NCBI RefSeq assembly: GCF_963921235.1 | Contig: NC_086122.1 | Coordinates: forward strand, 30,690,001 to 30,754,000 | DNA from: Mobula hypostoma | Lineage: Eukaryota | Reading direction: 5' to 3' | DNA length: 64,000 bases | In this document: piece after piece, positions 8,392 to 61,352 of the stretch | How positions within the stretch are numbered: position 1 is the first letter of the stretch | Layout of the letters: each line of letters opens with the position of its first letter | Program-made: the position numbers and the translations under genes | Notes under the pieces: model-generated | What the model was told of the DNA's origin: nothing | Databases searched by the model: none | Seen by the model: the letters and a program-made list of their open reading frames with translations, nothing else

Positions 8392-8557
8392 AATCGAGAA
8401 GCGTGCCAAGTACAGCAGACGACGCCGTTACAATGACGATGCTGATATTGATTATATTAATGAGAGAAACGCCAACTTCAATAAGAAGGCAGAACGCTTC
8501 TATGGAAAGTATACTGCAGAGATCAAGCAGAATTTGGAGCGAGGAACAGCTGTTTAA
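8392..8557 (+). CDS. SYF2: SYF2 last coding exon ([26 protein letters not shown]...[10 protein letters not shown])
   Basis: tttcag acceptor, highly conserved SYF2 C-terminus, TAA at 8555-8557. Candidate ATTAAA polyA signals at 9144 and 9160. Confidence 0.97.
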
Positions 8558-26203: not shown

Positions 26204-27023
26204 CTTTTTGTGTTAAGTGAATAGATCTTCCCCTTGATCTGCTTCGACTTCTGTGTGAAGAATGGGTTCTGTACATAAAACTATGGTAGTTCCTTGGACG
26301 CTTGGATGAAAATCTTGACCTTGATCCTGAGCGGGATCTTCTGTACCTCAAGCTAGACCTAGATCTTGATCGGTACCTGAGGGGTGACCGATACGACATA
26401 TGATATCTTGATCTTCGGTAACAAGACCTTGAGCAGCTTCGAGACCGGGATCTTGAATGGGTTCCTCTTGATCTTTTGTATCTCTTCTCACGTGATGCAC
26501 ATCTTGACCTTGAAGCCGAATTAGTGTATTTTGAACTTGATCGGTACCTTTTTAATGAGGACACAGAACCCAAATAGGAACTGCCTGACGAGGACACCGA
26601 ACTTGATCTGGAACTGCCAGAAGAGGACATTGAATCTGACTGAGAGCTACCAGAAGATGAGACTGAACTGGAACGAGAGCTACAGGATGACGATACCGAA
26701 CTCGATCGAGAGCAACTCGATGATGACATCGAACCAGATCGTGAGCTGGCAGAGGATGAAACAGAATCTGACCGAGAGGTAGCAGAAGATGAGCAACAAC
26801 TTCCCAAAGATGATACTGAACCTGACTTCAAGATTTTGCATTTCTGATAGCCTGGAGTTCTGGACCGTGACACTCTCTTACACTTTTGAGGCTTATCTGA
26901 AGCAAGACACAATTCATCCACACCAATTGCAATTTTCTCAGCCTTCTTCTTCTGTATACTGCACCTATTTGTTCCCCACTTCATTTCAGACATTTGTTCA
27001 CGTTCCAGATTATGCAAATGCAT
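26204..27023 (-). CDS. RSRP1: RSRP1 first coding exon, Ser- and Arg/Ser-rich region
   Basis: (CT)n-cccctgccccag acceptor at 27030-27029, ATG at 27023, RS-rich ORF ending RSRGRSIHLTQK with donor gtagaa at 26203. The start codon choice (27023 vs in-frame 27149) is uncertain. Confidence 0.88.
26541..26771 (-). repeat. Coding 33-nt tandem repeat (7 units, consensus SxSVSSSGSSR) in RSRP1
   Basis: SDSVSSSASSR/SGSMSSSSCSR/SSSVSSSCSSR/SSSVSSSGSSQ/SDSMSSSGSSR/SSSVSSSGSSY/LGSVSSLKRYR. Confidence 0.85.
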
Positions 27024-27040
27024 TTTACCTGGGGCAGGGG

Positions 27041-27071
<31 letters not shown>

Positions 27072-28822
27072 AGAAAAGTCAGTATAGGATAGTGTAGAGG
27101 GCAGTTTGCTCGGGAGAGCATGCGCAGAGTCACCAGATACCGACGCCATATTTCAAGTACTTACACAAACTGAATTAATTCAAATGGTACAAATTTCAGC
27201 TGCTATTTTCTAGTACTGCATTTATAGTATGAAATACAACTTTATTTCTTTGAACTTTAACACACAGGAAGTCCCTTACTCATTTGGCTATGCTGGCTCT
27301 ATAATCTTTATATTAGTTCAAGTGCTCCATTCTCCTGCACAGATCTCCTTTTCCAAGTAATTCCTAGTTCACTGCAAGTAGATCCTATTCTGCTTTAAAA
27401 GTACTGTAACTGCTATATATTAGATTTTCTTTTCAAGCAATGTTATGATCAATTGAACATACAAAATCTTCATTTTTCTTCTGGTTCTCTTGGCCAAATA
27501 ATTTCAATTAAACCCCTTAGGACAATTTCCAAGTACTGTACAGATTCTTTTTTATTGTATCAAATAGATGAGACTGAATTTTAATTGAATCCTTAACCTT
27601 CTTTGCATTGAAGGCAAAAAATACATCAATACCAAACTTACCAAAGCTGGATTTCTTTTTCATCAGTTCCCAGGATAAATCAGTTGAATCTGGCCTGTTA
27701 ACACATAGAAAAATTAAATTGAAACATGGGACACTTATGTTTATGCAATTACAGGGAGGCTGCTGATCTGCAACGCAATTCTCTCCATGTGTAGATACAT
27801 CAGATATATATACACACACACAAAGAAATAGAAGTTACAAGTTAAAATTGACAATTTCAAGTGAGCAATTTTTATTATCACACTGCTAAAGTGCAGATAC
27901 TATCTGTAGTTCAATTTACAGTAATTAAAGTTCCATCGAGGACTCAACTCGCAAAAGTTTATATCTTACTTATTGAAAAATGAACCTGATTATCCATCTC
28001 TGTATGCCACAAAACCCTTTCCAATAACTATTTCCATGTACATTCAATACCCAAATCACAGACTTTCATAGACTCTACTTTCATCAATACCAAAGTCCAC
28101 TCATTGCCAACACTGCCTCCAGATCAAAAACTATTTTTTTTTTAATTCCCAGTTTAAAACAAGTCATTGACCTTATTGCAGCTCAAATTTGATACTGCAA
28201 TCTAAATCACTGAAATTCAATTTCCTTAAACAAGACACTACCTCAAGATCCAGAACCGAAATGGACTCTTCCCACCACCTCCACCTTTTCTCAAGGTGGT
28301 CAAGACTTTGTTTAAATGGAAGTCTGACTTACAATATTAGTAAATTGGATGGGAAGCCAAACAACAATATTCTAACAGTACAAGTAAAAGCTATACTGAT
28401 TTTAAACTTTTAGAAAGTGGCAGACTGGTACATATGCATGAGATTAAAGTTGAAGGCAAATTAGACAGGATTAAAAATATTTTAATTTTTTTAGAATTAA
28501 TTTTTAAGTAGGATATTTCTCCTAGAAGTTTACAAGACTTTTGTTTTATACAGCCATAGATTGCTAACCAGTAACTACAGCTATACAGTTCATTATACTC
28601 CATCTTTTTGTGAGAAGTATTTAATTGGTCAGTTGCATTCTAGATGTTTCCAGCTAAAAGCTTCATTGTATATTGACCATTACCACAAAATCCAGGCAAT
28701 AGTTCAATTCAGTGAATCCTGTCCTTTGATTTGCATGCTGGATAGCAATACCTGTGCCATTTTCTCTTCACAATAGGGGAAAATACTCAAGCACCTCCAT
28801 CCTATTGGCCCCATCAACTTAC

Positions 28823-34817: not shown

Positions 34818-34973
34818 ATGCAGTACGTGCCGCCGCAGAGTGCGAAAGCCCACCCCACTCAACTCATACCCCCTCAGTTCGGCTACGTGATCCTGGTGTT
34901 CATTTACAGCTGGGTCATGCTGGCTTACCTGGGAGCCAAAGTGGGCTTCGCCAGGAAGAAATACAACGTCAAG
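34818..34973 (+). CDS. mgst3b: Microsomal glutathione S-transferase 3-like (mgst3b type, MAPEG) exon 1 (MQYVPP...FGYVILVFIYSWVMLAYLGAKVGFARKKYNVK)
   Basis: ATG inside a GC-rich island (~34630-34970), AAG|gtaagg donor, ARKKYxVK motif of MGST3 and FGYVI..YSW typical of fish mgst3b. Confidence 0.9.
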
Positions 34974-35257
34974 GTAAGGAGAAATCAAAACCCTTATCTA
35001 GGGTTAGTTCCATTCCAAACACCAGAGCTTGGGTTTACTTCTTTATCAGCTGAAGGTTTTCAGCAAACACTGCGTTGCGTTGTTCATCCACCCGTTGTCT
35101 ATCCACCTGGTTAACATTTAAAGTTCCTTTGAATTCTCCCGTGGGTTTTGGTTCCTGAAATTGGAGGGAGGCTCCCTCTTGGTGACAAGGCCCATGGCTC
35201 CATTTTCTCAAAGGGGAGTCTTTTTCACAACCATAAATTTTCATCAAAATATACCTA

Positions 35258-37304
35258 CAGTGCCTTGAAAAAAGTGTTCAGCCCCCAACCCTTTGCTTGC
35301 ATAAATGAGTATTGCAACCAGGGATTTTGATTAATTTAACTGAGAATTGTTATTTGTAAATCACATACTCCTTTCTTCACAGTAGAGCCAAAAAAAACCC
35401 AGAAAATTGTAAAATATGGAAATCTAAAACTTCAAAAACTGAAATGTCTGTTGTTCAAAAAGTATTCATCCCCCATTGCTCAATACTTAGTTGACCTGCT
35501 CCAGAGGATATCACAGCCAGCAGTCTTTTTGGATAAGTCTCTGTTAGCTTTGCACAATGTGATGGAACAAGATTTGTCCTTTACTCCTTGCAAAATTGCT
35601 CATGCTGTGCCAGGCTAGTTGGGGAGTGTGAGTGGACAGCAGTCTTGAGGTCTTGCCAGAGATGTTTGATCAGGTTAAGGTCAAGACTGACTGAGTCACT
35701 CAAGAACATCAATATTCTTCCACTTGAAGCCACTCTATGGTTGCTCTGGCCTGCTGAAAGACTAACTTCTTCCCCAGTTAACGCTTTCTAGCAGAAGCTA
35801 GAAGTTTTTTTTAATCCAGGATCTCTGTATTTAGCAGTGTTTATCTTCCATCAATCCTGACTGGATCTCCAGTTCCTGCTGCTGAAAAGCATCCCATAGC
35901 ATGATGCTACCTCTACCATACTTTACAGTAGGGATGGTGTTACCAGGCTGATGCGCAGTATTAGATTTACACCACACGTACTGCTTAGTGTTGAGGTCAA
36001 AAAGTACAACTTTAGTCTCATACGGCATGAAGACCTTCTTCCACATCTTTATAGTATCTTCTAAGTGATGCTTTGAAAGCCTTTATGGACAAGCGTATGC
36101 TTTTTTTAAAATAAGCCAGAGCTTCTTCCTTGCCACTCTTCCACAAATTCCCTTTTTTTTTTGAAAGGCCTTAGAGATGAGAGGTGACCTGATAGAGGTA
36201 TACAAGATGATGAGAGGCATTGATCGTGTGGATGGTCAGAAGCTTTTCCCCAGGGCTGAAATGGCTAGCTCAAGAGGACACAGTTTTAAGGTGCTTGGAA
36301 GTAGGTACAGAGGAGATGTCAGGGGTAAGTTTTTTTACGCAGAGTGGTGAGTGTGTGGAATGGGCTGCTGGCGACAGTGGTGGAGGCGGATACAATAGGG
36401 TCCTTTAAGAGATTCCTGGACAGGTACAAGCAGCTGAGAAAAATAGAGGGCTATGGGTAACCCTAGGTAATTTCTGAGGACAGGACATATTTGGCACAGC
36501 TTTGTGGGCTGAAGGGCCTGTATTGTTCTGTAGGTTTTCTATGTTTCTAGATTGTGGAGCCATGAACTGGAGTCATCTCCAGTTGCAGCTCACTCAGAGT
36601 GACTGTTGGCATCACAGTAGCCTCTCTTACAAGTCTATTCTTCTCCAGCAACTACGTTTAGAGGTGCAGCCTGACCTAGGCAGTGTGGCTATGGTTTCAT
36701 ATTTTTCCACAATGGATTGCTCTGAGCTCCAAGGTGTGTTCAGTGCCTTTGAGATGGTCTTGTGCCCATCTCCAGATCTCTATTATTTCTCTGACTTGCC
36801 TTGAATGCTCTTTTATCTTCATTTTGGTTTGGTCTGTTGAATATCTACCGTGCTGTTGGACCTTACAGAAAGAGGGGTGTTTATTCAGGTGATCCTCCAA
36901 TTTTCTACATCAACAGATTGGATGAGTTAGTAAGGTAATGCACAGTATATTGCACCTGACCAAAGTCAGTGGAGTAGTTACAAAGGGGATGTATACCTCA
37001 CCATTTTGATTTTTGGTACATTGTTGATAGGGTTGGGGAATTTTTCTTTTGATTTGACATGATGCACAATGTTTTGTAGATTAGCTCAAAAAGTTATACT
37101 TAAATATGTTTTAAATTTAGAACTGGTGGTCTTCCATACAACCTTGCCCAGGCCTGCGCCGTGGAGAGTGAAGACTTTCCGGGCGCAGATCCATGGTCTC
37201 GCAAGACTAACGGATGCCTTTAATTTAAAATTTAGAAAATTTAGAAAATGAGACAGTAAAATGTGAAAATAGTTGTGGAGGCTGAATACTTTTTCAGGCC
37301 ACTA
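35258..37304 (-). mobile_element. Decayed Tc1/mariner DNA transposon with nested CR1 (~36173-36548) and SINE fragment (37121-37219)
   Basis: TA|cagtgccttgaaaaaagtgttcagcc left TIR, ggctgaatactttttcaggccact right [28 protein letters not shown] transposase remnant. Confidence 0.88.
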
Positions 37305-39254
37305 TGGGCTTATATTACTGATTTTCTCAAAAATTTTGAATGAAAAATACAAGTGGTATTTAAAATTCTTTACTTTATACTTTATTGTCACCAAACAATT
37401 GGCACTAGAATGTACAATATGTAAATATTGGTACTAGAATTTACAATATGTATTTTAGTTAAAATGAGCAGAGAGAAGTAATCAGGATATGGTCATACAG
37501 TTGGTATTAATTATGTATTACTCACAAAGTCCTAATTATTCCTCATCATATGTTTAAAAAAAATCACAAAAGACTATCCATTTCGGATAGAGGCATTCTG
37601 TGCACCTAAATTCTTTTGCTTGACTCTAGGATCCTGACTGCTATTTTGTGGTCTAATTACATTAATATTTGCAGACTTTGATTTATTTTAATTTATTATC
37701 TGATTCTGTTTCCGTTTTCTACATGACAACTACCTTCAATTTTGAACATTCATACCAATATTACCTGCCTGGAATCTGGCGATTTTTTTCGATCCCCAGG
37801 TTCTTTTAGGCGTCCAAGAATGCGCAAAAACTTATTGCTTCATGATCGTTTATTTTAGAGCTTAAACATAGGACCAGATGCAGAATATATGAAACCAAAG
37901 ATCCTCAGGAAAATACAAAGAACAAGATGGTGATATTTGCAGAGCCTGACAGTTTTGTACTTAAGGTAATGCAAATTCCTGAGATAAGGAAGAACCAATT
38001 AAAAGATACACAGTCACAGCACGTGTCATGTGCTAACACTTAGCCAGTGAAAAAAGAACAACCTGTTGTGAAACTGCTTTACCCCCTTTCCACCAGTAGA
38101 CGGAGCCAAACACTACATAATTGTGAAAATATACTTATTTAAACATAAATTGTGTGTTGGTAAAACTGATGATTTTAGTCTTGCTAAAAATCTTGTTAAA
38201 AATACAAAACACAACCAATTCGAACAGCTACATCCTACGTTCTTGTTCATGGGTAACTTTCATTTTTATTTTAGACAATCCCATATTTGCAAACTGCTCT
38301 ACAGTTTCTTTGCCTTTTTTTTAAACCTACTGCACCAATTTTGCTGTCATCTTTTCACTTCTGCCATTTCAACAAATGCTGCTTATAGTCGCTTGGGGGT
38401 ATTGCATGAATATTTTAAATCATTTTTGTTCACTTTTAGGGATTGTTATCAAAGGTTCAATTTAATGTCAGAAATGTATACAATATACATCCTGAAATGC
38501 TTTTTCTTCACAGGACATCCATTAAAACAGAGAAGTGCCCAAAGAATGAACAAAAGTTAAATGTGAGAACCCCCAAAGTTCCCCCCCCCCAGCATGTAAG
38601 CAGCAGAAAAGCAAGAATTATATTATCATATCAGGTCTTTATATTTCCTATCATCAGCACGTGCTGTGTCATATGATGTGGACGATCATGGTTACCATGA
38701 ATGTTATTGGCAAATTTTGTTTTCTACAGAAGTGGTTTGCTATCGCCTTCTTCTGGGCAGTGTCTTTAAAGATGGGTGACCCCCCGCCCCAGCCATTATC
38801 AGTACTCTTCAGAGATTGTCTGCCTGGCATCAGGGGTCAGATAACTTTTCTAGAAATCATGCCTCTTGGTTCTGCTTAGACAGAGAAAAACTTCTCTCAG
38901 TTTCACATGTTAAAACTTGTAGTAATTGTATAAATTGCAAGATAACTCTCCTCATTTATGTAAACTTTAAAAAATAAATACCATTTTACTCAATCTCTCA
39001 TGTCAAACCCGCCATCTCACCAAACCATTCTAGTGAGCTGTCACTGTTCCCTTTCAGGCAAGTACTTTGTTTCATCCAACAACATGTTTTGATCCATTGA
39101 CTGATTCATTTGATTTAATTAACCTGCTTAATCCTTTAAATACATATCTTCACTGTTGTCATTACCTCACCAAACCCTTTCACTCAACAAAATTCACACT
39201 CTGTATATTATTTGGCAATGTATTTAGAAACATTCATTAAAGAATAATATATTA

Positions 39255-39610
39255 TTTGTGTGTGGCTGGGTGGAGATGCAAGGCGCTCCTTCCCTCCAGT
39301 AGCCTGCAGCTCGCCCTTGGGTAGCACTTGCTAGCCCCCACCTCCCAATCAGGGCCACATGGAGCCATCGGAGCAGGTGGTGGATGATCCTATGAGAGCT
39401 GGTGCATATCACATGTCCTGGCTATGCGACCACTGACACTAGGCAGACAGTCTCTGAAGAGTATTGATAATGGCCCCTCTTGTAAAGACACTACCCATAA
39501 GAAGGCAATAGCAAACCACTTCCGTAGAAAACTTGGCCAAGGACAATCATGGTCACATGTTGAAAGACCATCATCGCCCATGTCATACAACGAGGCTCAG
39601 AATGAATGAA
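39255..39610 (+). mobile_element. Short interspersed repeat family with copies at ~38660-38845(-), 45645-46040(+) and 61620-61980(-)
   Basis: Shared blocks such as aggcagacaatctctgaagagtattgataatggc and tgtaaagacactgcccagaagaa in four places. Confidence 0.8.
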
Positions 39611-39761
39611 CAAACGTTATGTTATTTGAAATGGAACTTGTGTGGATTAATTTTCCATTGGTGAACATTGAAGGTGGATTTTTGAAGCTGAGGCATTCAC
39701 AAAAGTTATGGGACTGTGTTAGTTATTAGTTTTGTGACAGTATCTTCCAATTTCCTTCCAG

Positions 39762-39884
39762 TATCCAAACATGTATAGTGATAAAGAACCCATATTCAAC
39801 TGCATCCAACATGCACATCAAAACACATTGGAGATATATCCTCAATGGCTGATCTTCCAACTGATAGCTGGAGTTGTCTATCCG
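39762..39884 (+). CDS. mgst3b: MGST3-like exon 2 (YPNMYSDKEPIFNCIQHAHQNTLEIYPQWLIFQLIAGVVYP)
   Basis: ttccag acceptor, gtaaga donor, 123 nt, FNCIQxAHQNTLE signature. Confidence 0.95.
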
Positions 39885-41447
39885 GTAAGAAAATGGCAGT
39901 GTAGTTAATGGGGATATTCTGCCATATACAATCTCATTGCTGTTTCCAGTCAGGTGATGGGTATTACAGTATAATTTCTTCAGCTTTTGTCTAAAGCTCT
40001 TCCTTACTTCCAGCCCATAATGCCACTGGTGTTTAGAGCAGTAATGAAAGTCTTCCATCTCTGGTAGTGGTCTTCGTGTCATTATTTTCCTCTTGGTTTT
40101 CACTACTGTCAGTCATGCAAGCTGAGGGTGGAGTCTCAGGAATATCATCATACTCAGATTTAGAAGGAATCTTCATTGCTGTTTCCGTAACAATTTTGGT
40201 TTACCAGTCAGGGTTGTTGGCCTTGAACTGATTCCCCCAAACCTGGAGGACCGGTGGACCACTACCCTTTGACCTGTTTGGCATGGGTGACCCTACCAAG
40301 AACCAAACCATAACCCCTTACTCCAGCCAACTTAGCTCTCTGGGTCACTGAGGCAAACAGGCCTCCAAACCACAAGCGGATTGTGGTCCTCTTGAAGCAT
40401 CTAAAGGTCTACAAGATTTAAGTTAAGGTGTAACTAACACAGTCTTGCTCCCAAAAATGAAAGCGATATTTTTAACATGATTACTCATAAAAAAATTATC
40501 GTGCAGAATCCTAGGGGGAATGGGGCAGTTGCCTGAGAGTCAAGAGTTAAATATCTTTTCACATAATCTGCAATCCTAAAGATTGTAAAATAAGGGAAGT
40601 GAAAGACAGTATTCTGCAGTACTTGTCAACGAGTATTACTCAGCAGGCAAGAAAAAAAAATCCCAAGCATTGCACAGCAACAACAGATGTCCAAATATTC
40701 CTTCAGGTGCTGCACCCATTTGTCTTGAGTCCTCCCTCAGCACTGCCCTAATATTGGCCAGAGAATTCCCTTGACAGTGAGCCAATCTTACACTTGGAAG
40801 TGCCCGTTGGTGATGGGCTGGATCAATGAACTTTTACAATTATTAAAATTTCAGGATAAGAAATAGATTATTATCACCCGGTTGACATCTGTTTGATCAA
40901 AATGCATTTCACTGGATAAATTCTATAATACTTAACTCTGTCCAACTCGTTTTCACAGAGGAAAGAAATACTCTTCCTCTAGCAACATATTTTTCCTTGT
41001 TTATGTGTAAAATGGCCATTTTCTAATCTTGACCCTCCCCGCAGACTAATTATGTGCTTAGCTGTGCCTTGAATCTATTGGTACAAAACTATGTTACAGA
41101 CGAGGTAAAATTGGGCAGATGGTATGCCATCATATATTCTTGTTTCTCTTTAGATTAAGAGGTTTCAAATGAATTCCCTATTGTGACTGATACCTATGAA
41201 AAAATATATAGATTTACAAGAAATTTTACTCTAAATACTGTATACTGTACACCTTAATCAGAAATATTGCAGTGTCTTAACTTTAAAATCTGTGATTTTT
41301 GTAAAATTCTGAGTAGCAACTTTCAGTACAAGAACAAAAGCTGTGAAAATGTTAGTAAGTAAACAATATTTATTGAATATGTTAAGTCTTTCTTAATGTT
41401 TCTCACTCTGAACATGGGGATAATATAGTGTACTTAATATTTCACAG

Positions 41448-41520
41448 ATCACTGCTTCTGTGCTTGGTGTCATTTGGGTAACCAGTCGATTTACTTATGC
41501 ATGGGGATATTACACAGGGG
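41448..41520 (+). CDS. mgst3b: MGST3-like exon 3 (ITASVLGVIWVTSRFTYAWGYYTG)
   Basis: cacag acceptor, gtaggt donor, 73 nt, RxxYAxGYYTG motif. Confidence 0.95.
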
Positions 41521-42487
41521 GTAGGTATTATGTAAATTATGTCTGTACAAATATATCACTTAAATATTCAATAGATTAATGAATTTGTTTAATAATGTTA
41601 AAGTACAATACCATAGTGCCAGCAGGAAAGAAAGATGCACTTTTTGCATCACAGGACTCCAACTTATCAAAGCAGCATATTGTTCAAGTACAATGTAAAT
41701 TCAGCAGGTATATCCACATTCAGCAAAGAAAACTTTTAGTAATATCATTTGAGGGAGGAATCTAGAAAATACCCAGGATTGTTAATACTTATCAAAACCA
41801 ATGGATCATTTTGACTATATCTCAACATAGCATCTCTTAGAAAGGATGAGACTCCCAGTAATGCAGCAATAATAGACAAGATTCTGCAAGGAAATTGGAA
41901 TTTACTTACCGGTGCAAAGGTAGGCATTACCAACCAGTGAACACTGTCATCTAGAGTCAGTGTAAACAGGAAATGAAGCAGCAAGAAGTGTTTTTATATC
42001 CAAAATAATTATAAAGAAAGTTTTAAAGGAAGTGACATAGCTTGGTGTCAGTCAAAACAATTATATAAATGTACATAGGTAAAAACTAACAAAAATGGTC
42101 CTTAGTTTCAGAAAAGCTAACACAAGAAAAATACATTTAATATGGCAAGACCCTGAACAGTGTTGATGAACAGAGGGATCTTGAGGTCCAAGTTCATAAC
42201 TCCCTAAAAGTATCTGCACAGGTTGATAGGTGGTTAAGAACGCATATGGTGTGCTTGCTTTTATTCGTTGAGGCATTCAGTTCAAAAGTCAGCAAGTTAT
42301 TTTACAACTTTATAAAACTAGTTAGGCCATACCGGGTGTATTGCATACAGTTCTGGTCACCCCAATATGGGAAGGATGTCAAGGCTTCGGAGAGGGTACA
42401 GAATAGGTTCACCAGGATCAGAGGGCGCGTAATATAATGAGAGGTTGGACGAACTTGGGTTTTCTTCTCTGGAGCAGTGGCTTTCTA

Positions 42488-45400
42488 AAACATAGAAAGT
42501 CTACAGCACGATACAGGCCCTTCGGCCCACAAAGCTGTGCTGAACATGTCTTTACTTTAGAAATTACCTAGGGTTACCCATAGCCCTCTATTTTTCTAAG
42601 CTCCATGTACCTATCCAGGAGTCTCTTAAAAGACCCTATCATATCCACCTCTACCACCGTTGCCGGTAGCCCATTCCACGCATTCACCACTCTCTGCATA
42701 AAAAACCTACATCTCCTCTGTACCTACTTCCAAGCACCTTAAAACCGTGCCCTCTCCTGTTCAGCCCTGGGGAAAAAGCCTCTGACTATCCACACGATCA
42801 ATGCCTTTCATCATCTTGTACACCTCTATCAGGTCACCTCTCATCCTCCATCGCTCCAAGGAGAAAACTCGACCTGTTCTCATAAGGCATGCTCCCCAGT
42901 CCTGACAACATCCTTTTAAATCACCTGTGCACCCTTTCTACGATTTCCACATCCTTCCTGTAGTGAGGCGACCAGAAATGAGCACAGTACTCCAAGTGGG
43001 GTCTGACCAGGGTCCTATATAGCTGCAACATTACCTCCCGGCTCCCAAAATCAATCCCAAGATTGATGAAGGCCAATGCACCAAATGCCTTCTTAACCAC
43101 AGAGTCAACCTGCACAGCAGCTTTGAGTGTCTTATGGACTTGGACCCTGAGATCCCTTTGATCCTCCATACTGCCAGGAGTCTTACCATTAATATTATAT
43201 TCTGCCATCATATTTGACCTACCAGAATGAACCACCTCACGCTTATCTGGGTTGAACTCCCATCTGCCACTCCTCAGCCCAGTTTTGCATCCTGTCGATG
43301 TTCCACTGTAACCTCTGACAGCCCTCCACACTATCCACAACACCCCCAACCTTTGTGTCATCAGCAAATTTACTATCCATCCCTCTACTTCCTTATCCTG
43401 GTGATTTATAAAAATCACGAAGAGTAGGGATCCCAGAACAAATCCCTGAGACACACCACTGGTGACTGACCTCCATGCAGAATATGACTTGTCTAAAACC
43501 ACTCTATGCTTTCTATGGGCAAGCCAATTTTGGATCCACAAAGCAAGGTCCCCTTGGATCCCATGCCTCCTTACTTTCTCAATAAGCTTTGTATGTGGTA
43601 CCTTATTAAATGCCTTGCTGAAATCCATACACACTACATCTACTGCTCAACCTTCATCAATGTGTTTAGTCACATCCTCAAAAAATTCAATCAGGCTCGT
43701 AAGGCACAACCTGCCTTTGACAAAGCTATGCTGACTATTCCTAATCATATTATGCTTCTCCAAATGTTCATAAATCCTGCCTCTCAGGATCTTTTCCATC
43801 AACTTACCAACTACTGAAGAAAGACTCACGTGTCTATAATTTCCTGGGCTACCTCCACTCACTTTCTTGATTAAGGGAACAATACCTGCAACCCTCCAAT
43901 CTTCTGGAACCTATCCTGTCCCCATTGATGATGCAAAGATCATCGCCAGAGACTCAGCAATCTCCTCCCTCACCTCCCCCAGCAGCCTGGGATACATCTC
44001 GTCCAGTCCCGGTGACTTATTCAACTTGATGCTCTCCAAATGCTCCAGCACATCCTCTTTCTTAATGTCTATATGCTCAAGCTTTTCCATCCGCTGTAAG
44101 TCATCCCTACAATCACCAAGATCCTTTTCCGTAGTGAATACTGAAGCGAAGTATTCATTAAGTACCTCTGCTGTCTCCTCCGGTTCCATACACACTTTTC
44201 CACTGTCACACTCAATTGGTCCTATTCTCTCACGTCTTATTCTCTTGCTCTTCACATACTTGTAGAATGCCTCAGGCTTTTCCTTAATCCTGTCTGCCAA
44301 GGCCTTCTCATGGCCCCTTCTGGCTCTCCTAATGTTATTCTTAAGCTCCTTCCTGCTAGCCTTATAATCCTCTAGATCTCTATCATTACCTAGTTTTTTT
44401 AACCTTTCGTAAGCTTTTCTTCTTGACTAGAATTACAACAGCCTTTGTACACCATGGTTCCTGTACCCTGCCATCCTTTCCCTGTCTTATTGGAACGTAC
44501 CTATGCAGAACTCCACGCAAATATCCCCTGAACAATTGCCACATTTCTTCCATACATTTCCCTGAGAACATCTGTTCCCAATTTATGCTTCCAAGTGCCT
44601 GCCTGAGAGCCTCATATTTCCCCTTACTCCAATTAAACGCTTTCCTAACTTGTCTATTCCTATCCCTCTCCAATGCTATGGTAAAGGAGATAGAATTGTG
44701 ATCACTATCTCCAAAATGCTCTCCCATAGAGATCTGACACCTGACCAGGTTCATTTCCCAATATCAGATCAAATACAGACCTACATATTGTGTCAGGATA
44801 CCTTTCTGAACACACCTAACAAACGCCACGCCATCTAAACCCCTTGCTCTAGGGAGATACCAATCAATATTTGAGAAATTAAAATCTCCCACCATGACAA
44901 CCCTATTATTATTACCCCTTTCCAGAATCTGTCTCCCTATCTGCTCCTCGATGTCCCTGTTGCTATTGGGTGGTCTATAAAAAATACCCAGTAGATTTAT
45001 TGACCCTTTCCTGTTCCACCCACAGAGACTTCGTAGATAATCCCTCCGTGACTCCCTCCTTTTCTCAGCTGTGACACTAACTCTGAATGGCAGTGCCACA
45101 CCCCAGCCTCTTTTGCCTCCCTCTCTGACAATTCTGAAGCATCTAAAGCCTGGCACTCTATGTAACCATTCCTGCCCCTGAGCCATCCAAGTTTCTGGAA
45201 TGGCCACAACATCATAGCTCCAAGTACTGATCCACGCTGTAAGGTCATCTGCTTTGTTCAAAATACTCCTTGCATTAAAATAGCCACATCTGAAACTATT
45301 GGACTGAGCACATCCCTTCTCTATCACCTGCCTATCCTCCCTCTCGCACTGTCTACAAGCTTTCTCTATTTTGTGAGCCAGCTGCCTCTTTCTCCGTCTC

Positions 45401-45555
45401 TTCAGTTTGGTGAAGTTTAAACTCTCCCCAATAGCGGTAGCAAACCTCCCTGCCAGGATATTGGTCCCCCTCATATTCAAGTGCAAACCGTCCTTTTTGT
45501 ACAGGTCACACCTGCCCCAAGAGTTCCAGAAATCTGAATCCCTGCCCCCTGCACC
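42488..45555 (-). mobile_element. Long decayed CR1 LINE (ORF1 esterase end, APE endonuclease, RT) nested in an older plus-strand CR1
   Basis: WGRCDLYKKDGLHLN (ORF1 SGNH-like), YFNARSI/GIFYRPP/VGDFN (EN), SDHN, KSPGLDEMYPRLL, DFSKAFNKVPH. Host CR1 lies at ~42130-42480 and resumes at ~45556. Confidence 0.93.
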
Positions 45556-46459
45556 GGCTGAGGGGAGATCTGATAGAGGTTTATAAGATTGAGCAGCATA
45601 GATAAACAGTCTGTTTTTCCAAGGGTTGAAATGTCTTAATACCAGAGGTGGGGTGGCAGGGAGCGAATGTGTCTTTACCAAAGGAAATGTAAGGCTCTCC
45701 TTACCTCTGCGAGCCTGCAGGTCACCCTTGGGCAAGGTGTAGTACCTGCCTAGCCCTCCCCGATTATGGTCAGGTAAAACCATGGGAGCAGGTGGTGGAT
45801 GGTCGTATGAGCAGCTGGTGCACATCACAAGTCCTGGTTATGCGATCACTGATGCCAGGCAGACAATCTCTGAAGAGTATTGATAATGGCTGGGGTCACC
45901 CTTGTAAAGACACTGCCCAGAAGAAAACAATGGCAAACCACTTTGGTAGAAAAATTTGCCAAGAACACTCATGGTCATGTAAAAGACCATGATTTCCCAC
46001 ATCATACATACAATACAGCAGATAACAAGTGAATGAACGTAAATAAATATAATGAAAAGGTGAAATTCATCATCTCCAAAGATTATCATTGGTCACACAT
46101 TGATCCAAACTGAGCACATACCAATTATCCATTGGTTGTTATCCCTGCTTATTTATTCCTTGTTTCAGCCAGTGGGTTACTCCCAATTTCATCAGCTCTT
46201 ATTTTTGTTGTTTCCCTCCAACTTCTTGTGTTACATTTGCCCATTCCCATCTCTGTATCATTGACATTGATAAATTGATATCAAACTCAAATTGTATTAA
46301 TCACCTTGAGAGTATTTATCAAGTTTTTTTTCTCGTTTCTTTTCCTTTTGTAATACTAAAATGTCCATTTATTGGTCTTTTTGGTGTTTACAAATATTTT
46401 CGTGGTTATTTTTAATCTGGCCAGTTTTTATTTTCCTTTCCTAGTCTACATGCTTAATA

Positions 46460-47430
46460 TGGTGGATTCCAGTTAATTGAGACCAGTGCATTTTGGCCCA
46501 ATAAAGCAGCTGTCCCATTTAGCTGAACTTTCATGGAAATAGTTTTCAAAAAACCATTTAACTGAGTAACAGATTATGTATTTAAATTAAAAGAACGAAC
46601 AAATTTGGAGACTAATAATGCTACTAGTGCTATAAAACTGTATTAGTTCCTAATAATTATCGATGGAATTCATCCAGTGTATACCACCGTGTTCTTTTGA
46701 CTGTATATAAACAATCATAGACACCTCATGTAGATAAGACTACCTTCATATAATCCTTTCATTGGTTGCATCCTCTAATCTTTATTTTCATTGTAATGTT
46801 CAAGATCGTCGATACCTTTTAAAATCTTCATAGAATTTAAGGATCTTTGTCGAATTCTTCATGCTTGTTGAAGTAGTGAAATCGTTCATTATAAGGATCT
46901 ACCCCTTTAGTAATAATAATCGAAGCACAGAGAGTTTCTATATACCAACAAGTAGCCTTTATTGTCTCAACTAAAATGCTCGTGGGTTCACAAACTGACT
47001 ACAGCTGTGCACCCCCACTAGTATTCCCCGACCCTTCATGAACAGTTAATGAAGAGAAAAGGTATTACCCGGGAGAGGAGTCTACTCCGAGTCAGGCTCT
47101 CCTTGTCTTCACGCTCCTATCTCTACGTGTCCATGGGGTCACCTCTTGTAATAGTTTAATTTTCACTCCTGGACACTTTTAACATCTCCAAATGTGAATG
47201 CTTAAAACCAGCGACCAAAATAGTTCTGAATTTTCTTACTGTTTATTTCTTGCCAACTATGTGATAAAATCAGTGCTTTTTGAACACAAACACTCACAAC
47301 TTACGGTATTTAAGTACTGTTCACTCTAAGCATGGCAAAGTGGCCACACCAGTGCATGTGACCAAAGCTTGTTGGCCCAAATAAGTGACTGCCTCTATTA
47401 ACTAATGGCCCAATTAACCAGAATCTACTG
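46460..47430. mobile_element. Tigger/pogo-like non-autonomous DNA transposon with a probable internal LTR-like insert (~46890-47150)
   Basis: TA-flanked TIRs tggtggattccagttaattg / caattaaccagaatctactg. Confidence 0.7.
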
Positions 47431-47692
47431 TATTTGTAATTGCGATTCTAGCTTTTTTGCCAAACATTCACCAACCATTCTGTAGCCTTTGATTCTTTAC
47501 CCACTCTTTGGTCAGTATGTAGCTTCGAAAGAGTGATCTACACTGGTCCACAAGCCATAAAGCTCCTATTTTCGTACAACACCAACTATTCAGCATACAC
47601 CATCTAAAACTTGCAATTTATATTTTTAAAAAATAATTAAACGTTTAAGAATACAGATGGTGGTTCATCCGGTATCTGCTTTTTCTTTACAG

Positions 47693-47793
47693 TGCCAGAG
47701 AGAAGAATGACTGGGTCCTACGGATACATTGGCCTTCTGGGAGTCATTTTCCTGTCCATATTCATTGCTTTTAAAACCCTTGTTTCACAGTGA
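47693..47793 (+). CDS. mgst3b: MGST3-like last exon (VPERRMTGSYGYIGLLGVIFLSIFIAFKTLVSQ*)
   Basis: ttttctttacag acceptor, phase fits, TGA at 47791. AATAAA candidate at 48618. Confidence 0.93.
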
Positions 47794-50571
47794 TAAAACT
47801 ACCACAACAATAGGTTGTGAAAGGTTTAAAAAAAAGTTGTCAGGCATTCAACATATCCAGCCATTTTGAAATGGACACCAGCTCCGAACTTCTTCCTGCT
47901 CCTTGTTTATCAACTGGTTTAAATATTGCCAACATGCGGTAGAGTTTTCTTCCAGCTATGTTATGCACTACAGTTTTGTTATATTTAATCAAATGGTATA
48001 CTGGGAAACAAGATTAAATTCCAAATTTCTTTTTTTTTTTAATCTTTAGGCTAAATTTTAATTTTTACTTTTTAGCTAAATTCTGTGATTCTTGTTGAAG
48101 TAATATTGAACTGAGTTTAATATTTTTCATCTTTCAAGATGGTCACTAAAGTTATTTCAAAATTTTAATCTAACAGCCTCAGTTTATATTATGGGTTGAA
48201 TTTAAATCTGACAAAAGATTACAAGTAGAAAATATAAATGTACAGAACTGGTGAAAGAATGTTAAGTTATAATTCAGCTGATAGGAACATATCAACCATT
48301 GAAAGAGAAAGCTAGGGAAAGGCAAGGCTGTGATTCATCAATGAATGCCCTGACAGTGACAACTGAAACAAGTATACACTTTTCATATGTTCACTGACTT
48401 GTATATTACGTGTTTGACAGATTTTCAAAACCATTAAATGTTATCCATTTTAAACTTCATTCAAATCAAATAATGGAATGGCTTTTAGTATAATTTTGTC
48501 TTAAACTTCATGCATCTTGTTGTAACCATTCATCAGGATCCAACTAGTCAATTATTTCCTCAAAAGTGCATTTTTAATGTACAATTCTTGATGTGGTTGT
48601 TCCCGATTTAATTTCTAAATAAATATCAACTTTAAAACTAACGTTAGTTATTTTTGTGGTACAAAAACTCTATAAATTAAAAAGCTGTGTAATGTATAAA
48701 TGGACAGCAACAAACCATCCAATACTTTGCAGAAAAATGCTGAAGTAACAGGATACAACCTTCATAGATTGCAACAAAAAATTCTTCACACTACAATAAC
48801 CAACACCCGGTCCAGGAGTTAAAAAGAAACATAATGGCTATCAGTGACAATGGTTTTAAATGCGTACTCCATTTTTAAGTCATTTTAAAGTTTTTCTTCA
48901 CTGAAGTTTCATCACTGAACTGTTCCCACAACCAAGATTCATTTTCAAGGACCTTTAATCTCATGTTCTCAATACTTATTTTCTTTTTGCATTAACAGTT
49001 TCTTGTCTTTCACACACCGGTTGTCCGCCCTGGTGATGCGACCTTTCATTGATTCTACTATGGTTATTAGATTTAATGATTATGCCCACAAGGAAATGAA
49101 TCTTAGGGCTGTTTCCAGTGGCATATGTACTTTGATAATAAATTTACTTTGAACCTTTAAGTTATTTTTCCCCCTTAATAGTGAGGCTTCATGCTCACGC
49201 TACCCTCATAAGCTGTTTGTACCTTCATCATGTGAGTTCCAATTGCTACAGCCCAATCTACTGTTAAAAATATGCAAAAGCAATGTTAGAAATTTCCGAA
49301 AATAATTGTACGTAGAATCCCTTTTGCATTTGCTAACCAACGGTGGAAATACCTGTGTAGACAGCAACGCACAAGACCCAGCAGGACTCCACATGGACAA
49401 ATAGTCCAACATTTGGGCAAAGGAAAAGTGCCCATCACCCACAGCATTCTAGAGGAGAAAATGTACTGAGCAACCTCCGGTAATGTTAATTCCGTTATTT
49501 GCAAAAAGTGTCAGAAGGGATGTTTTTTGCCATCATAAAAATATTTATCTTCTTTTGCCTATTAGTGTCCCCTTTGTTATTACAATCCTAGTAGTCAAGG
49601 CATCAAGAACAGCAAAATTAAAACGTGTTTTTTAATTACAGTACCTTTTTCTACATATGTTTATATACCTACTCAACAACCTCTTTGCCTTCTGGTTCAT
49701 CATCTCTAGCACTACACCCAAAACTACTGGTTAATCATCAAATACCTGATTAAATGGGAATACATTTAACTGTCAAGAGCACCAAGTCACAGTGCAAACA
49801 CCAGGGATAGGCTTTGATTCATTCTTGGCATGGTCTGGGGGTCCAACAGTTGAAATGAATTGTGCTCAAGAGGCAAAGTGAACAATATTCTTCCCAAGCC
49901 ATGTTGGTACCTTGCTAACTATCTCACAGGAGTAGCCACAAGAAAATGCAATCTAGTGACATACATTAGGAAAGTTGACTTTTAATATTAATAAATTTCA
50001 TTATTGGGGGAAAAAGACTACAGATTTCATGAGAAGCCTTAAATATGAAGTGAAGCATGTAATGCTAACAAGTAAATTCAATACGGTACAGTTTATCTTT
50101 GTTCAGAATGTTATCCTATTTCACTAACTATAGAAAGGGTTCAGAAGTGGTCTTGATAAGGTACTGCTACTTATTTAATTAGATACAGGAATAGGTCCTT
50201 CTGGCCCTTCAAGCCATGTCACTCAGCAACTCCCAATGGCCTCCAATTTAACCCTAACCTAATCACAGGGCAGCAATGACCAATTAATCTACTGATAGGT
50301 ACATCTTTGGACTGTGGGAGGAGACTGGAGCACCCCAGAGAAAACCCATACGATCCATGGGAAGGAAGCACATACTCCTTTGCCGGGATTGAACATCAAT
50401 GCCCCGAGCAGTAATCACGCTGCACTAACCACTGCGCTCTTCATGAAAGCTCAAAAACAAATTCTTGCCAACCAAATCACAAACAAGAGAAAGTTTGCAG
50501 CTGCTGGAAATGCATGTTGCTTGCCAACCAAATCCTGGTTTCCAAAGGAATGAGCCCATATTTTTCTAATA

Positions 50572-50623: not shown

Positions 50624-51900
50624 TTCAAATACAACATTGCTTCAGCAAGAATGGCAGAGCAAAGAGTTTCATGGCAATGTTGTTTTTTTCCATTTTAAAT
50701 CTAACCAAAGTTAAGATTTTCTATCGAACTTCAAATATGAACGTCAGTGACAAAGAATAACAATCTTCCCATCTCCATTACATCAAACAAACACAATGTC
50801 ATTATCAGGCTAGATTTCATTCAACAGTTCAACAGAAGTTGGATTTGAACTGTGATGATGTAGATTTAAGTGGATGCTATGATTGAGTCAAGCATGAACA
50901 TATTTCATTGGAAACAGCATGGTACACTAATTAGAATGTTCCACAATAAATATTAGCTGGAAACATTCCTCTAGATGCCTTAATTTTGATGGCATGGTTG
51001 AATTTTTAGCAGAACAAACTACTCTTTCAGTTAAATACAAGTGCTAGAAATTCAAATACACTTCACAAAGAGGGAATCTCATACATAGACAATCAGATGT
51101 GAATTGGTACTGTTTTAAACAACTTATCATGCGGTGCTGGAAGATTGTGGGTTCAACTGCCAAAGCAGAGATTACCATCCCCACTGTCACTTCATTCAAA
51201 GCTGTTTCGATTGGTTAATGGTTCCAGTCAAGTTTCTGCCAAAATATCAAGCAGTTAAAGAAAATTAGGTCAACCAAAGAATGTTTATTACAAACTAAAA
51301 AATTATATATCCAATGTTACAAGATTTCAAAACAAAGTATAACCAATTCGTGTCTTTTAACAACAGTGTACTTCAAGCAACGCTTTCCAGTCAGTTGATT
51401 CATCTGCTTAAAAGGCAAATTTAAAACGTCAATATTTTGACTAATTGCCTTATACAGTTGGGTCAATCACCTCCTGTGGATTTGGGGGTCTTCAACTCTG
51501 TATAAGTTTTAAACCCTGAACAGAACAAGGATTTTCAACCATACATTTTTTAAAATTTTCAGGCCAAAATAATGTGGCACCGAATGAATGGACAATTAGA
51601 ATCTCAAAAATACACTGGGGGAAATAGCAATTGTACAACTTCTTAAAAAAGTAACACACAACCCGGCCCTTTCCTCCAGTCCGTCAGTAAATCCCTGAAC
51701 TGGACAGTACACGTTAATTCAAACTTGCAAGTGGGAAATCCGCTCACAGTTCGGTTGTTTAATGAAGATGGCGACATGCTTCGACTCTGTAACAAAAGAG
51801 TCAACGAACTGATTTTGAAACGGTGGCGCTGCCGTCCGATTGTCTCGGTTCAGGTTGCGTGAAACTTCGCCCTGGCTAATGTCCCTGGTCCAGGCGTTGC

Positions 51901-52386
51901 TTATCTGGTCGAGCGTACTAATCCAGGTCGTGAAGGCACCACCATCGGCCGGTGAGGCCCCATCATCGGGCCGGGCATCATGGGCACCGGGCCGCTGATG
52001 GGCGGTCTCATCCCCGGGCCCACCAGCATCATACCAGGAGGCGCAGGGCCCATCATCGGCATCATGGGCGGCCCTCCCATTGGGGGTCCGGGCAGGATGG
52101 CGGGCCGCGGCGGCGGCACCCCGACGTTCCCAGGCGGAGGTGGGATGGCGGCCCCAGCCGGGGGCGGCCCGGCCGGCGCCGGGAAGGGGGCCGTGGGCGG
52201 GATTTTGCCCTGGCGGAAGGCGGCCGTGGTCTTGTCGATGAGGCTTTGGGCCTGCTCCTCCATCCATTTCTGATAGTAGTCTTTGACGTTCTCCTTGTGC
52301 TTGCGCCCCTCACAGTGCGTCTTGCGGACGGACGGGGAGTCGTGAGTGAGGTAGGTGTCACAGTAATCGCAGTAATACTTCGGCAT
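51901..52386 (-). CDS. SNRPC: U1 snRNP protein C (U1-C), intronless CDS, 161 aa
   Basis: [57 protein letters not shown]: matrin-type zinc finger with C6, C9, H24, H30 intact, then a Pro/Met/Gly tail. Uninterrupted ORF. AATAAA on minus at 51289-51284. Confidence 0.96.
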
Positions 52387-52425
52387 CTTGTCTCCGTCCG
52401 AGTCCGAGAGCGCGGCTGCGTCACG

Positions 52426-52659
52426 GCACACGTGACTACCCGGAGCCAGACCGCCTCGTAGCACACGTGACTACCAGCCGCCAGACCGCCTCTCAGCACA
52501 CGTGACTACCAGCCGCCAGACCGCCTCTCAGCACACGTGACTACCAGCCGCCAGACCGCCTCTCAGCACACGTGACTACCAGCCGCCAGACCGCCTCTCA
52601 GCACACGTGACTACCAGCCGCCAGACCGCCTCGCAGCACACGTGACTACCCGCCGCCAG
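52426..52659. repeat. 35-bp tandem repeat (~6.7 copies), each unit carrying a CACGTGAC E-box, directly upstream of SNRPC
   Basis: Unit gcacacgtgactaccagccgccagaccgcctctca starts at 52426, 52461, 52496, 52531, 52566, 52601 and 52636. Confidence 0.97.
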
Positions 52660-53304
52660 GCATGCGCAGTAGCTTGCTCCAGCCTCAAGCCATGTGGTTT
52701 TGCCACAATTTAGAATTAAATCGATGGGGAAAATCCTGGAAATGTGAAATACAGACGCAGTGATCCCTGCAGGGATATATAAAGTTAACGCTACAGGTTT
52801 TAACTGAGTGTCTTTAATGCAATATGTGAACTGTTTTCTTTGCCTGAATTGTTGTGTCAGCAATTCAGAATCAGGTTTCATTTCACCGGCGTGTCGTGCA
52901 ATTTATTGTCTTTACAATAGCAGCACAATGTTTTCTAATAATAAAAAAAACAAGAATTACAGGAAGTGTACAGATATATTTACTAGAATTCGTGTTTTGC
53001 ATATTATATAATATATATTAGTTTAAAGAGTAGTGCAAAACTAGAAATAAAAAATAGTGAGGTAGTGTTCATGGGTTCAATGTCCATTCAGAAATCTGAT
53101 GGCAAAAGGGGAAGAAGCTGTTCCCGAATCGTTGACTCTGTGCCTGTATACTTCCTTCCCGATGGTGGCAATCAGGGTCCTTAATGATGGACGCCGCCCT
53201 TTTGAGGCATTGCTCCTTGAAAATGTACTACGAATGGAGATGACTACGTTTACAGTTCTCTGCAGCTTATTTCGATCCTTGCAGTAGCTGCACCCCCCCC
53301 CCCA

Positions 53305-54190
53305 TACTCACGGCTTCAGAGCTGTGTGTCAGACATGGTTATAAGCAGCACTGGGACCCCCCAGGGGACTGTATTGGCTCCCTTCCTGTTTACCTCGGAC
53401 TTTAGATCCAATACTGAGTCATGTCATCTGCAGAAATTCTCTGACGACTCAGCAATAGTTGGATGTATACAGGGAGGGCGGGAGGATGAGGCCCTAGTGC
53501 AGGACTTTGTCAAATGGTGCAAGCTGAATCATCTGCAGCTGAACATCAGTGAGACAACGGAGATGATGATGGACTTTAGGAAGACGAAGCACTTGCCCCT
53601 ATTACTATTGGTGGTGAGGACCTGGGGGTGCACCTGAGTGGACCACCAACACAGAGTCTGTGTACAAGAAGGGCCAGAGTCACCTCTACTTCCTGAGGAG
53701 ACCGAGGTCCTTTGAAGTGTGCAGGCCTCTCCTTCGCGTGTCCTACTCGCCTGTTGTCGCCAGTACAATCTTTTATGCAGCGATGTGCTGGGGCCATGGC
53801 ATCAACAAGGGTGATGCCAACAAACTAATTAGAAAGGTTGGTTCTGTTATAGGAGTCAAACTGGACGCACTGGAGGATGTGGTAGAACAAAGGATCCTAC
53901 GGAAAATCCTGACAATTCTGGACAATGTTTCTCACCCTCTGCATGCCACCTTGGCTGAACAGAGGAGTGCTTTTTGTAATAGACTAAAGACAACTGCGCT
54001 GCTCCAAAGAGCACTGTATAAGGTCATTCCAACCCTCGGCCAGGGCAAGTGATGACCCCCCCCCCCCCGTTAGACTGTTTGAGGCAACTTTTTTTAATAC
54101 TTTCTTACTTCTAATATTTGTATATCTGTGCACCTGTAAAGCCACTGTGATACTGTAATTTCCTTTGGGATCAATAAAGTATCTTTCTAT
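53305..54190 (+). mobile_element. Rex1/Babar LINE RT fragment
   Basis: STGTPQGTVLAPFLF, QKFSDDSAIVG, HLQLNISET, LYFLRR. Confidence 0.92.
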
Positions 54191-54219
54191 CTATACCGGA
54201 TGATGACATTACTGTTTCA

Positions 54220-54665
54220 AAAGTCACCAAAAAGTTGCAGAAAACTTGTAAAATTAGTCGGCTCTGTCGTGGGTACTCGCCTCCGTAGTATCCAAGACGT
54301 CTTCAAGGAGCGGTGCCTCAGGAAGGCGGGGGCCATTATTAACGACCCTCACCACCCAGGACATGCTCTCTTCACGCTGTTACCGTCAGGAAGAAGGTAC
54401 AGAACCCTGAAGGCACACACTCAGCGATTCAGAAACAGCTTCTTCCCCTCTGCCATCCGATTCCTAAATGGATATTGAACTCATGAACATTATCTCACTA
54501 CTTTTATTATTTTGCATTACTTAATTTAACTTACTACTTAATAGACATATGTATACTTAATGTAACTCAGTCTTTTTTCTCCATATTTATCATGTATTGC
54601 ATTGTACTACTGCCGTAAAGTTAGCAAATGTCACGACATATGCTGATGATATTAAATTTGATTCT
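54220..54665 (+). mobile_element. Rex/Babar LINE 3' fragment
   Basis: DPHHPGHALFTLLPSGRRYR..FRNSFFPSAIRFLN. Confidence 0.88.
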
Positions 54666-55539: not shown

Positions 55540-55719
55540 GGTGCGCATGCGCACCACTCCCTCCCTCCCTCCGCTTGTTATGCACTGGAGACGGGAGGAT
55601 TGCGTCATGGGGGTGACGCCACCGATCACGTGACGGCCAGCTCCTAGCGGGCATGCGCATCACTCCCTTGCTCGGACGGGGCAGCTGTCTATTGTTTGTC
55701 CGGATTTGTGGGTTGTGAA
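55540..55719 (+). promoter_or_regulatory. TMEM50A: TMEM50A CpG-rich promoter and non-coding exon 1
   Basis: NRF1 palindrome TGCGCATGCGCA 55542-55553, TGCGTCA 55601, CACGTGAC 55627, GCATGCGCA 55651, donor GAA|gtaagt at 55720. Confidence 0.8.

Positions 55720-61211: not shown

Positions 61212-61352
<141 letters not shown>

Follow-up and report, generated by a model that had tools for sequence, protein, structure and literature searches.

We analysed a 64,000-nt window from the genome of the ray Mobula hypostoma (NCBI RefSeq assembly GCF_963921235.1, contig NC_086122.1, positions 30,690,001 to 30,754,000 of the forward strand). It contains an intronless SNRPC gene, which encodes the spliceosomal protein U1-C. 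We think that this gene, which is the working SNRPC of cartilaginous fishes (Chondrichthyes), is probably an ancient retrogene, most likely without a surviving parent. Coordinates below are positions in the window unless another locus is named. The gene and the CpG island around it are:

51901..52386, minus strand: SNRPC (U1-C) coding sequence, a single unbroken exon of 161 codons plus TAA (supported by orthologues and by the ratio of nonsynonymous to synonymous substitution rates, dN/dS)
51736..52786, no strand: CpG island that takes in the promoter and the coding sequence and reaches into the first part of the 3' untranslated region (UTR), from -400 to +650, with GC of at least 0.5 and CpG observed/expected of at least 0.6

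The open reading frame (ORF) runs on the minus strand from the ATG at 52386 to the TAA at 51901-51903 and encodes 161 amino acids without a break. The translation has all four zinc ligands (Cys6, Cys9, His24, and His30), and its first 38 residues match the whole of the Pfam zf-U1 profile (PF06220, positions 1-38 of 38, E = 6.1e-23). Residues 1-160 are collinear with residues 1-158 of human U1-C (PDB 6qx9 chain 1C, E = 9.5e-70), and residues 1-61 match 2vrd/4pjo with E = 1.6e-37. The U1-C architecture is complete: past the finger there is a helix (residues ~31-61), followed by a C-terminal tail that is rich in Pro, Met, and Gly. As a protein, the product is an ordinary U1-C, with the same architecture as human U1-C (6qx9, 3cw1, and 4pjo/2vrd), and it should act as a canonical U1-C and be incorporated in the U1 small nuclear ribonucleoprotein. 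One difference is Glu26, which stands in place of Ser or Gly. The gene differs from other vertebrate SNRPC genes in its single coding exon and in its location by TMEM50A and an MGST3-like gene.

The coding sequence has a GC content of 0.67 (0.81 at third codon positions, or GC3), and its flanks have 0.32-0.40. Over the stretch around the ATG that extends from about -400 to +650 (~51736-52786), CpG observed/expected takes values of 0.8-1.15. An earlier reading of this window, made from the sequence alone (the sequence-only reading), had described an uninterrupted 161-residue U1-C ORF with four zinc ligands, high GC and CpG content, and a CpG-rich upstream region. The translation, the zf-U1 match, and the extent of the island all agree with it.

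On GCA_963921235.1, a gene of 486 bp encodes exactly the ray protein; its neighbours are a UPF0220 (TMEM50) gene on one side and a MAPEG gene on the other. We compared this locus to those of Chiloscyllium plagiosum, Callorhinchus milii, Amblyraja radiata, Scyliorhinus canicula, and Rhinoraja longicauda. The SNRPC coding sequence is unbroken in all six chondrichthyans (the Mobula ray, two species each of skates and sharks, and a chimaera), and the gene spans no more than this coding sequence: 480 bp in Callorhinchus and 486 bp in the others. In all six, the TMEM50/UPF0220 gene is divergent from SNRPC (head to head) and the MAPEG gene is convergent with it (tail to tail). Orthologous copies beside TMEM50A, whose presence in other chondrichthyans the sequence-only reading had left to be checked, are thus found in five further species. 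That reading had proposed an old retrocopy kept under selection. Both the age and the selection stand, and we can refine the proposal: the gene is not specific to this genome, and every cartilaginous fish that we sampled has the orthologous SNRPC at the same position. Because the same intronless locus is found in holocephalans, sharks, skates, and rays, it originated before the crown-chondrichthyan split. Judged from this shared locus, the copy arose before chimaeras and elasmobranchs diverged, about 420 million years ago.

In other vertebrates, SNRPC lies elsewhere and has introns. In lamprey, SNRPC occupies 3.5-4.5 kb and is flanked by an ETS/SAM_PNT gene and BLTP3A; in the teleost Denticeps, a 1.5-kb SNRPC lies beside an ETS/SAM_PNT gene as well. 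(From its Pfam domains and its position, this ETS/SAM neighbour is SPDEF-like.) In the frog Hyperolius, SNRPC spans 10.1 kb and lies beside a UBA_4/N_BRCA1_IG (ILRUN-like) gene. We take human SNRPC to be at 6p21.31, among SPDEF, ILRUN, and UHRF1BP1/BLTP3A. Exact exon reconstruction gave six coding exons each for lamprey and teleost. Of the five coding introns, three interrupt the sequence after nt 8 (phase 2), nt 51 (phase 0), and nt 160 (phase 1); the other two, both of phase 1, are at homologous sites in the two species. These structures and neighbours indicate that a multi-exon SNRPC beside the SPDEF-like gene, ILRUN, and BLTP3A is ancestral for vertebrates. This bears out the statement of the sequence-only reading that vertebrate SNRPC is multi-exon. 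That reading had also pointed out that an SNRPC which was intronless at this position across gnathostomes would not be a retro-insertion; the teleost and frog genes are multi-exon and lie elsewhere.

The ray ORF reads through all five ancestral intron sites, so that all five introns are absent, and there are no introns in the SNRPC coding sequences of the ray, chimaera, skates, or sharks. Relocation together with complete intron loss therefore points to retroposition of a spliced messenger RNA (mRNA). Judged by structure and position, the chondrichthyan SNRPC is a relocated, fully processed copy.

We computed dN/dS for pairs of species by the method of Nei and Gojobori, with a binomial test against neutrality:

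Ray and Callorhinchus: dN/dS 0.042, dS 0.91
Ray and Amblyraja: dN/dS 0.065, dS 0.51
Ray and Rhinoraja: dN/dS 0.060, dS 0.51
Callorhinchus and Amblyraja: dN/dS 0.073, dS 0.77

Across these pairs, the binomial p values range from 1e-17 to 1e-24. Residues 1-61 have no replacements in any pair despite 12-15 synonymous differences (dS 0.5-0.7). The ORF is under purifying selection, and a pseudogene is excluded. Intronless copies of SNRPC are commonly pseudogenes, such as the copy from Narcine bancroftii that we describe below and many mammalian "U1C-like" entries, so we did consider that this might be a non-functional processed pseudogene whose ORF is open by chance. However, its orthologues are intact in six species that span the whole class, the dN/dS values are 0.04-0.07 (p below 1e-17) and not near 1, which is what the sequence-only reading expected of a young pseudogene, and there is conservation of both the 3' UTR and the promoter motifs. 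The true pseudogene from Narcine looks quite different: it has a 45-codon deletion, a frameshifted end with loss of the C-terminus, and 8 replacements in residues 1-61. The selection test and the class-wide conservation refute this explanation, to which we give virtually no weight.

The Narcine copy also helps define the transcript of the intronless gene, whose 3' end in the window is:

51268..51900, minus strand: SNRPC 3' UTR, ~633 nt, with conservation among batoids up to the cleavage site
51284..51289, minus strand: polyadenylation signal AATAAA, 611 nt past the stop (the plus strand reads TTTATT)

The signal is where the sequence-only reading had placed it (~610 nt past the stop). A single blastn block aligns 52392-51257 with Amblyraja L002 9995-11185; it starts 6 nt upstream of the ATG and covers the coding sequence plus ~640 nt of 3' UTR, and the similarity ends ~27 nt beyond the AATAAA. 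In a four-way alignment, the AATAAA lies within TTTTTAATAAAC, which is kept in Amblyraja, Rhinoraja, and the Narcine copy.

The Narcine copy (L003 9939-10965) lies within a cadherin intron and is annotated as a "U1C-like" ORF. It is a processed copy of the intronless SNRPC mRNA and carries the same 3' UTR. At its tail, the AATAAA is followed by 15 nt and then by nine A (L003 10921-10950). On either side of the copy there is a direct repeat with 13 of 15 positions identical (GAGCAGTTGATGGAC at 9939-9953 and GAGCAGTGGATGAAC at 10951-10965), which is a target-site duplication. In the four-way alignment, its poly(A) begins directly after the conserved TTTGGTTGA(C/T)C, which corresponds to position ~51268 of the window. 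Via this copy, we place the cleavage site at the conserved TTTGGTTGACC, also ~51268. A processed copy of the intronless mRNA implies that the intronless gene was transcribed in the germline, and it fixes the 3' end; together with the conserved 3' UTR and poly(A) signal, it lends indirect support to transcription of the gene. The pairwise dN/dS of the Narcine copy is 0.06-0.09, which is uninformative because most of the path is the functional lineage. We judged the copy by its unique replacements and its deletion instead. Although it derives from the same intronless mRNA as the gene in the window, and has the 3' UTR and the AATAAA in common with it, it is young and decayed: its poly(A) and target-site duplication are still visible, and residues that are otherwise invariant have changed. 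It serves as an example of a non-functional SNRPC copy for comparison.

Upstream of the ATG, and at the facing end of TMEM50A, we noticed these features:

52387..52425, minus strand: GC-rich stretch of proximal 5' leader that separates the repeat array from the ATG and ends in GACAAG-ATG; putative 5' UTR
52426..52659, minus strand: 35-bp unit repeated in tandem (6.7 copies) just 5' of the ATG region; part of the putative promoter
52660..52667, minus strand: NRF1-like GCGCATGC, 13-14 nt upstream of the first E-box; the pair is kept in skates
55540..55719, plus strand: putative TMEM50A promoter and non-coding first exon, with GCGCATGCGC, GATCACGTGAC, and GCATGCGC; donor GAA/GTAAGT at 55720

The GACAAG-ATG context is common to the ray, Amblyraja, Rhinoraja, and the Narcine retrocopy. 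An acceptor site just 5' of the ATG is unlikely because there is no polypyrimidine tract. The 35-bp array and a flanking partial copy contain seven GTCACGTG E-boxes (in the window as a whole, GTCACGTG occurs 9 times versus 0.55 expected), and skates have one E-box at the equivalent place. The array is likely a lineage-specific variable number tandem repeat in the promoter and is possibly polymorphic. The NRF1-like GCGCATGC, followed after 13-14 nt by TCACGTG, is found at -281/-258 in the ray, -116/-94 in Amblyraja, and -77/-55 in Rhinoraja. When the promoter cores of the ray and Amblyraja are aligned, the observed score is reached by 1 of 300 shuffles. In Callorhinchus, there are five CACGTG within 400 nt, plus GCGCGTGCGC at -59.

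The putative TMEM50A promoter is ~3.2 kb from SNRPC and head to head with it. It is CpG-rich, has two NRF1-type sites and the GATCACGTGAC E-box, and is conserved between the ray and Amblyraja (0 of 300 shuffles reach the score). In the compact genome of Callorhinchus, the CpG islands of SNRPC and TMEM50A are just ~0.5-1 kb apart. The promoters of both genes contain TGCGCATGCC, 14-20 nt, and then GTCACGTG on the SNRPC-sense strand. The TMEM50A promoter of Amblyraja has a 68-bp tandem repeat (3.1 copies, L002 6095-6308) whose units each contain GCGCATGCG and TCACGTGA; that is, the same motif pair is amplified on the other side of the gene pair. We infer that the SNRPC retrocopy became expressed through landing beside the CpG-island promoter of TMEM50A.

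We also considered that the SNRPC promoter might be a copy of the TMEM50A promoter, but the alignment is not significant (10 of 300 shuffles reach the score for the ray and 3 of 300 for Amblyraja), and we view this as a lead only. Separately, a transposable-element insertion at 53107-54449, which has no counterpart in Amblyraja, splits the two promoters in the ray. It contains a reverse-transcriptase fragment (53326-53637, a weak match to RVT_1) within 39-nt inverted repeats at 53107-53145 and 54411-54449.

Did the intronless gene replace its parent? In a search of a collection of 5.8 billion proteins, we found no second full-length chondrichthyan SNRPC among the best 120 of 1355 matches (down to 160 bits) or in the 90% cluster. 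That cluster has one protein each from Chiloscyllium plagiosum, Scyliorhinus torazame, S. canicula, Callorhinchus milii, Amblyraja radiata, and Rhinoraja longicauda. The chondrichthyan entries among the best 120 of 1355 matches are this one-per-species cluster, an Ensembl model from Callorhinchus (P0052, which is the same SNRPC locus with an artificial gap), and the Narcine pseudogene. A retained parent would score well above the cut-off of the list, which favours replacement. On the basis of annotated protein sets, it is likely that the intronless gene replaced the parental SNRPC in this class. The sequence-only reading had allowed either a second U1-C paralogue or a replacement; with no other full-length SNRPC among the matches listed, we favour the latter.

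Several observations weigh against a retrogene that took over from its parent. As the sequence-only reading had stated, no poly(A) tract or target-site duplication is visible beside ray SNRPC. The case for retroposition therefore rests on intron loss and relocation. Such relics characterise young copies, of which the one in Narcine is an example, and are no prerequisite for a retrogene; their erasure is expected after more than 400 million years. Beyond -6, blastn finds no upstream similarity between ray and skate, which have only the short motif pair in common. Lamprey SNRPC has a CCACGTGACC E-box 85 nt before the ATG, just ahead of a TATAAGAG box (L004-L006), so the E-box of the chondrichthyan gene may have arisen by convergence or may point to a more complicated origin. 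And the loss of the parent is read from annotated chondrichthyan protein sets.

The missing poly(A) and target-site relics, and a parental promoter in lamprey whose E-box could travel along, would fit a DNA-level rearrangement that moved SNRPC, with the introns lost separately, such as by recombination with a complementary DNA. However, the teleost parental SNRPC has no E-box within 1.5 kb, so the E-box is weak evidence for such a move. No ancestral neighbour (the ETS/SAM gene, the ILRUN-like gene, or BLTP3A) came along. Also, all five introns are gone together, while TMEM50A and the MGST3-like gene keep theirs, and the Narcine copy documents that this very mRNA has been retroposed within the lineage. 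We consider a DNA-level move to be very unlikely. Somewhat less improbable, but still unlikely, is that cartilaginous fishes have two SNRPC genes: the intronless one, as a functional second paralogue, and an intron-containing parent that persists at the ancestral locus but is missing from the annotations. Annotated proteins, rather than the ancestral locus, are the basis for parent loss, and the collections are incomplete: the window's own protein and the main SNRPC of Narcine are not in the clustered collection. But six annotated chondrichthyan protein sets and the independent Ensembl model give the intronless gene only. The NCBI name for the proteins of the cluster is plain "U1 small nuclear ribonucleoprotein C," not "-like." Furthermore, residues 1-61 have stayed unchanged for more than 400 million years, as expected of a sole essential copy, and the Narcine retrocopy derives from the mRNA of the intronless gene and not from another source.

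We prefer, then, an ancient retrogene that replaced its parent. We infer retroposition as the mechanism, and likewise the promoter use, the loss of the parent, and the biochemical function. We propose that reverse transcription of a fully spliced SNRPC mRNA gave rise to a copy that was inserted between TMEM50A and the MGST3-like gene (in the RSRP1-TMEM50A interval), in the stem lineage of chondrichthyans and ahead of the chimaera-elasmobranch split. The copy would have landed head to head with the CpG-island promoter of TMEM50A, and it would now be driven by a CpG-island promoter of its own, with the NRF1-like GCGCATGC and then the TCACGTG E-box. In the ray lineage, the 35-bp tandem repeat would have multiplied the E-box to seven. 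The predicted intronless mRNA has the 161-codon ORF and a 3' UTR of ~633 nt, ending ~20 nt past the AATAAA, near 51268. The N-terminal zinc finger of the encoded U1-C would stabilise the duplex between the 5' splice site and U1 small nuclear RNA. The original multi-exon SNRPC beside SPDEF, ILRUN, and BLTP3A was most likely lost, which would make the intronless gene an orphan retrogene. We lean towards, with rather less assurance, a fuller account: that a single, intronless, retroposed U1-C gene has served all cartilaginous fishes for more than 400 million years; that the multi-exon SNRPC was lost and U1-C production was uncoupled from splicing; and that expression is owed to insertion by the CpG-island promoter of TMEM50A, whose NRF1 and E-box pair the gene shares, and which was amplified sevenfold in rays.

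Retrocopies that replace an essential parent are rare. Orphan retrogenes of this kind (Ciomborowska et al. 2013, PMC3548309; Carelli et al. 2016, PMC4772013) are functional retrocopies whose parental gene has been lost. Like these, chondrichthyan SNRPC is intronless, sits at a new locus, is under purifying selection, would retain the ancestral function, and has no parent in annotations. A neighbour's CpG-island promoter also fits the routes of promoter gain that these papers report. Their catalogues cover human, other mammals, chicken, and worm, while SNRPC is a core spliceosomal case and has become fixed throughout a vertebrate class. Orphan retrogenes are defined by the loss of the parent, which for chondrichthyan SNRPC is likely, judged from annotations. 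The intronless rhodopsin of teleosts (PMC6650399) is similar in that an ancient, clade-wide, intronless retrocopy of an essential gene is the main copy: the retroduplicate took over the retinal role. It belongs to an unrelated protein family, and its intron-containing parent survives separately, whereas the parent of chondrichthyan SNRPC was not found in annotations. We searched the literature for SNRPC as a retrogene, retrocopy, or intronless gene and for retrogenes of cartilaginous fishes, and found no description of this gene in searchable full text. What is new is the origin of chondrichthyan SNRPC; the gene itself is already annotated in public genomes.

The mechanism of retroposition is well understood, and this case is clean, class-wide, and concerns a core spliceosomal protein. 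If our proposal is true, then the replacement of a core spliceosomal component across a class, more than 400 million years ago, is among the oldest clear cases. It would also mean that U1-C synthesis in cartilaginous fishes cannot be regulated by splicing of its own pre-mRNA, while other vertebrates keep five conserved introns. This is a natural experiment, in that intron-dependent controls of U1-C can be compared directly with those of other vertebrates. It also bears on the features with which intronless housekeeping mRNAs are expressed: GC3 is 0.8-0.95 here versus 0.55 in the teleost parent. The intronless SNRPC provides a clean synapomorphy for Chondrichthyes. And the SNRPC-TMEM50A pair may be suitable for studying how head-to-head CpG-island promoters gain and amplify modules of NRF1 and E-box sites.

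The other genes in the window are:

584-733 and 8294-8554, plus strand: last exons of SYF2 (Pfam SYF2)
26190-27149, minus strand: Arg/Ser-rich ORF, consistent with RSRP1
34869-48734, plus strand: MGST3-like MAPEG gene, with four exons that read like MGST3 (FNCIQHAHQNTLEIYP)
47682..48734, plus strand: the part of this MAPEG gene that faces SNRPC tail to tail, namely its last coding exon and its 3' UTR
61221..61319, plus strand: first coding exon of TMEM50A (UPF0220, E = 0.0012)

The sequence-only reading had placed SNRPC in a SYF2-RSRP1-TMEM50A block. SYF2 and TMEM50A are confirmed by their Pfam matches; the Arg/Ser-rich ORF that we take as RSRP1 is consistent with that gene but has no match to a Pfam family. 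The MGST3-like gene between RSRP1 and SNRPC was absent from that reading and is there in all six chondrichthyans. Beyond TMEM50A, Callorhinchus has an Rh (ammonium-transporter) gene, an arrangement that is also that of the mammalian TMEM50A region. Finally, the window has ORFs that resemble the reverse transcriptases of long interspersed nuclear elements, at 1500-2896 and 16358-16942 on the plus strand, within and downstream of SYF2; these are ordinary repeats.

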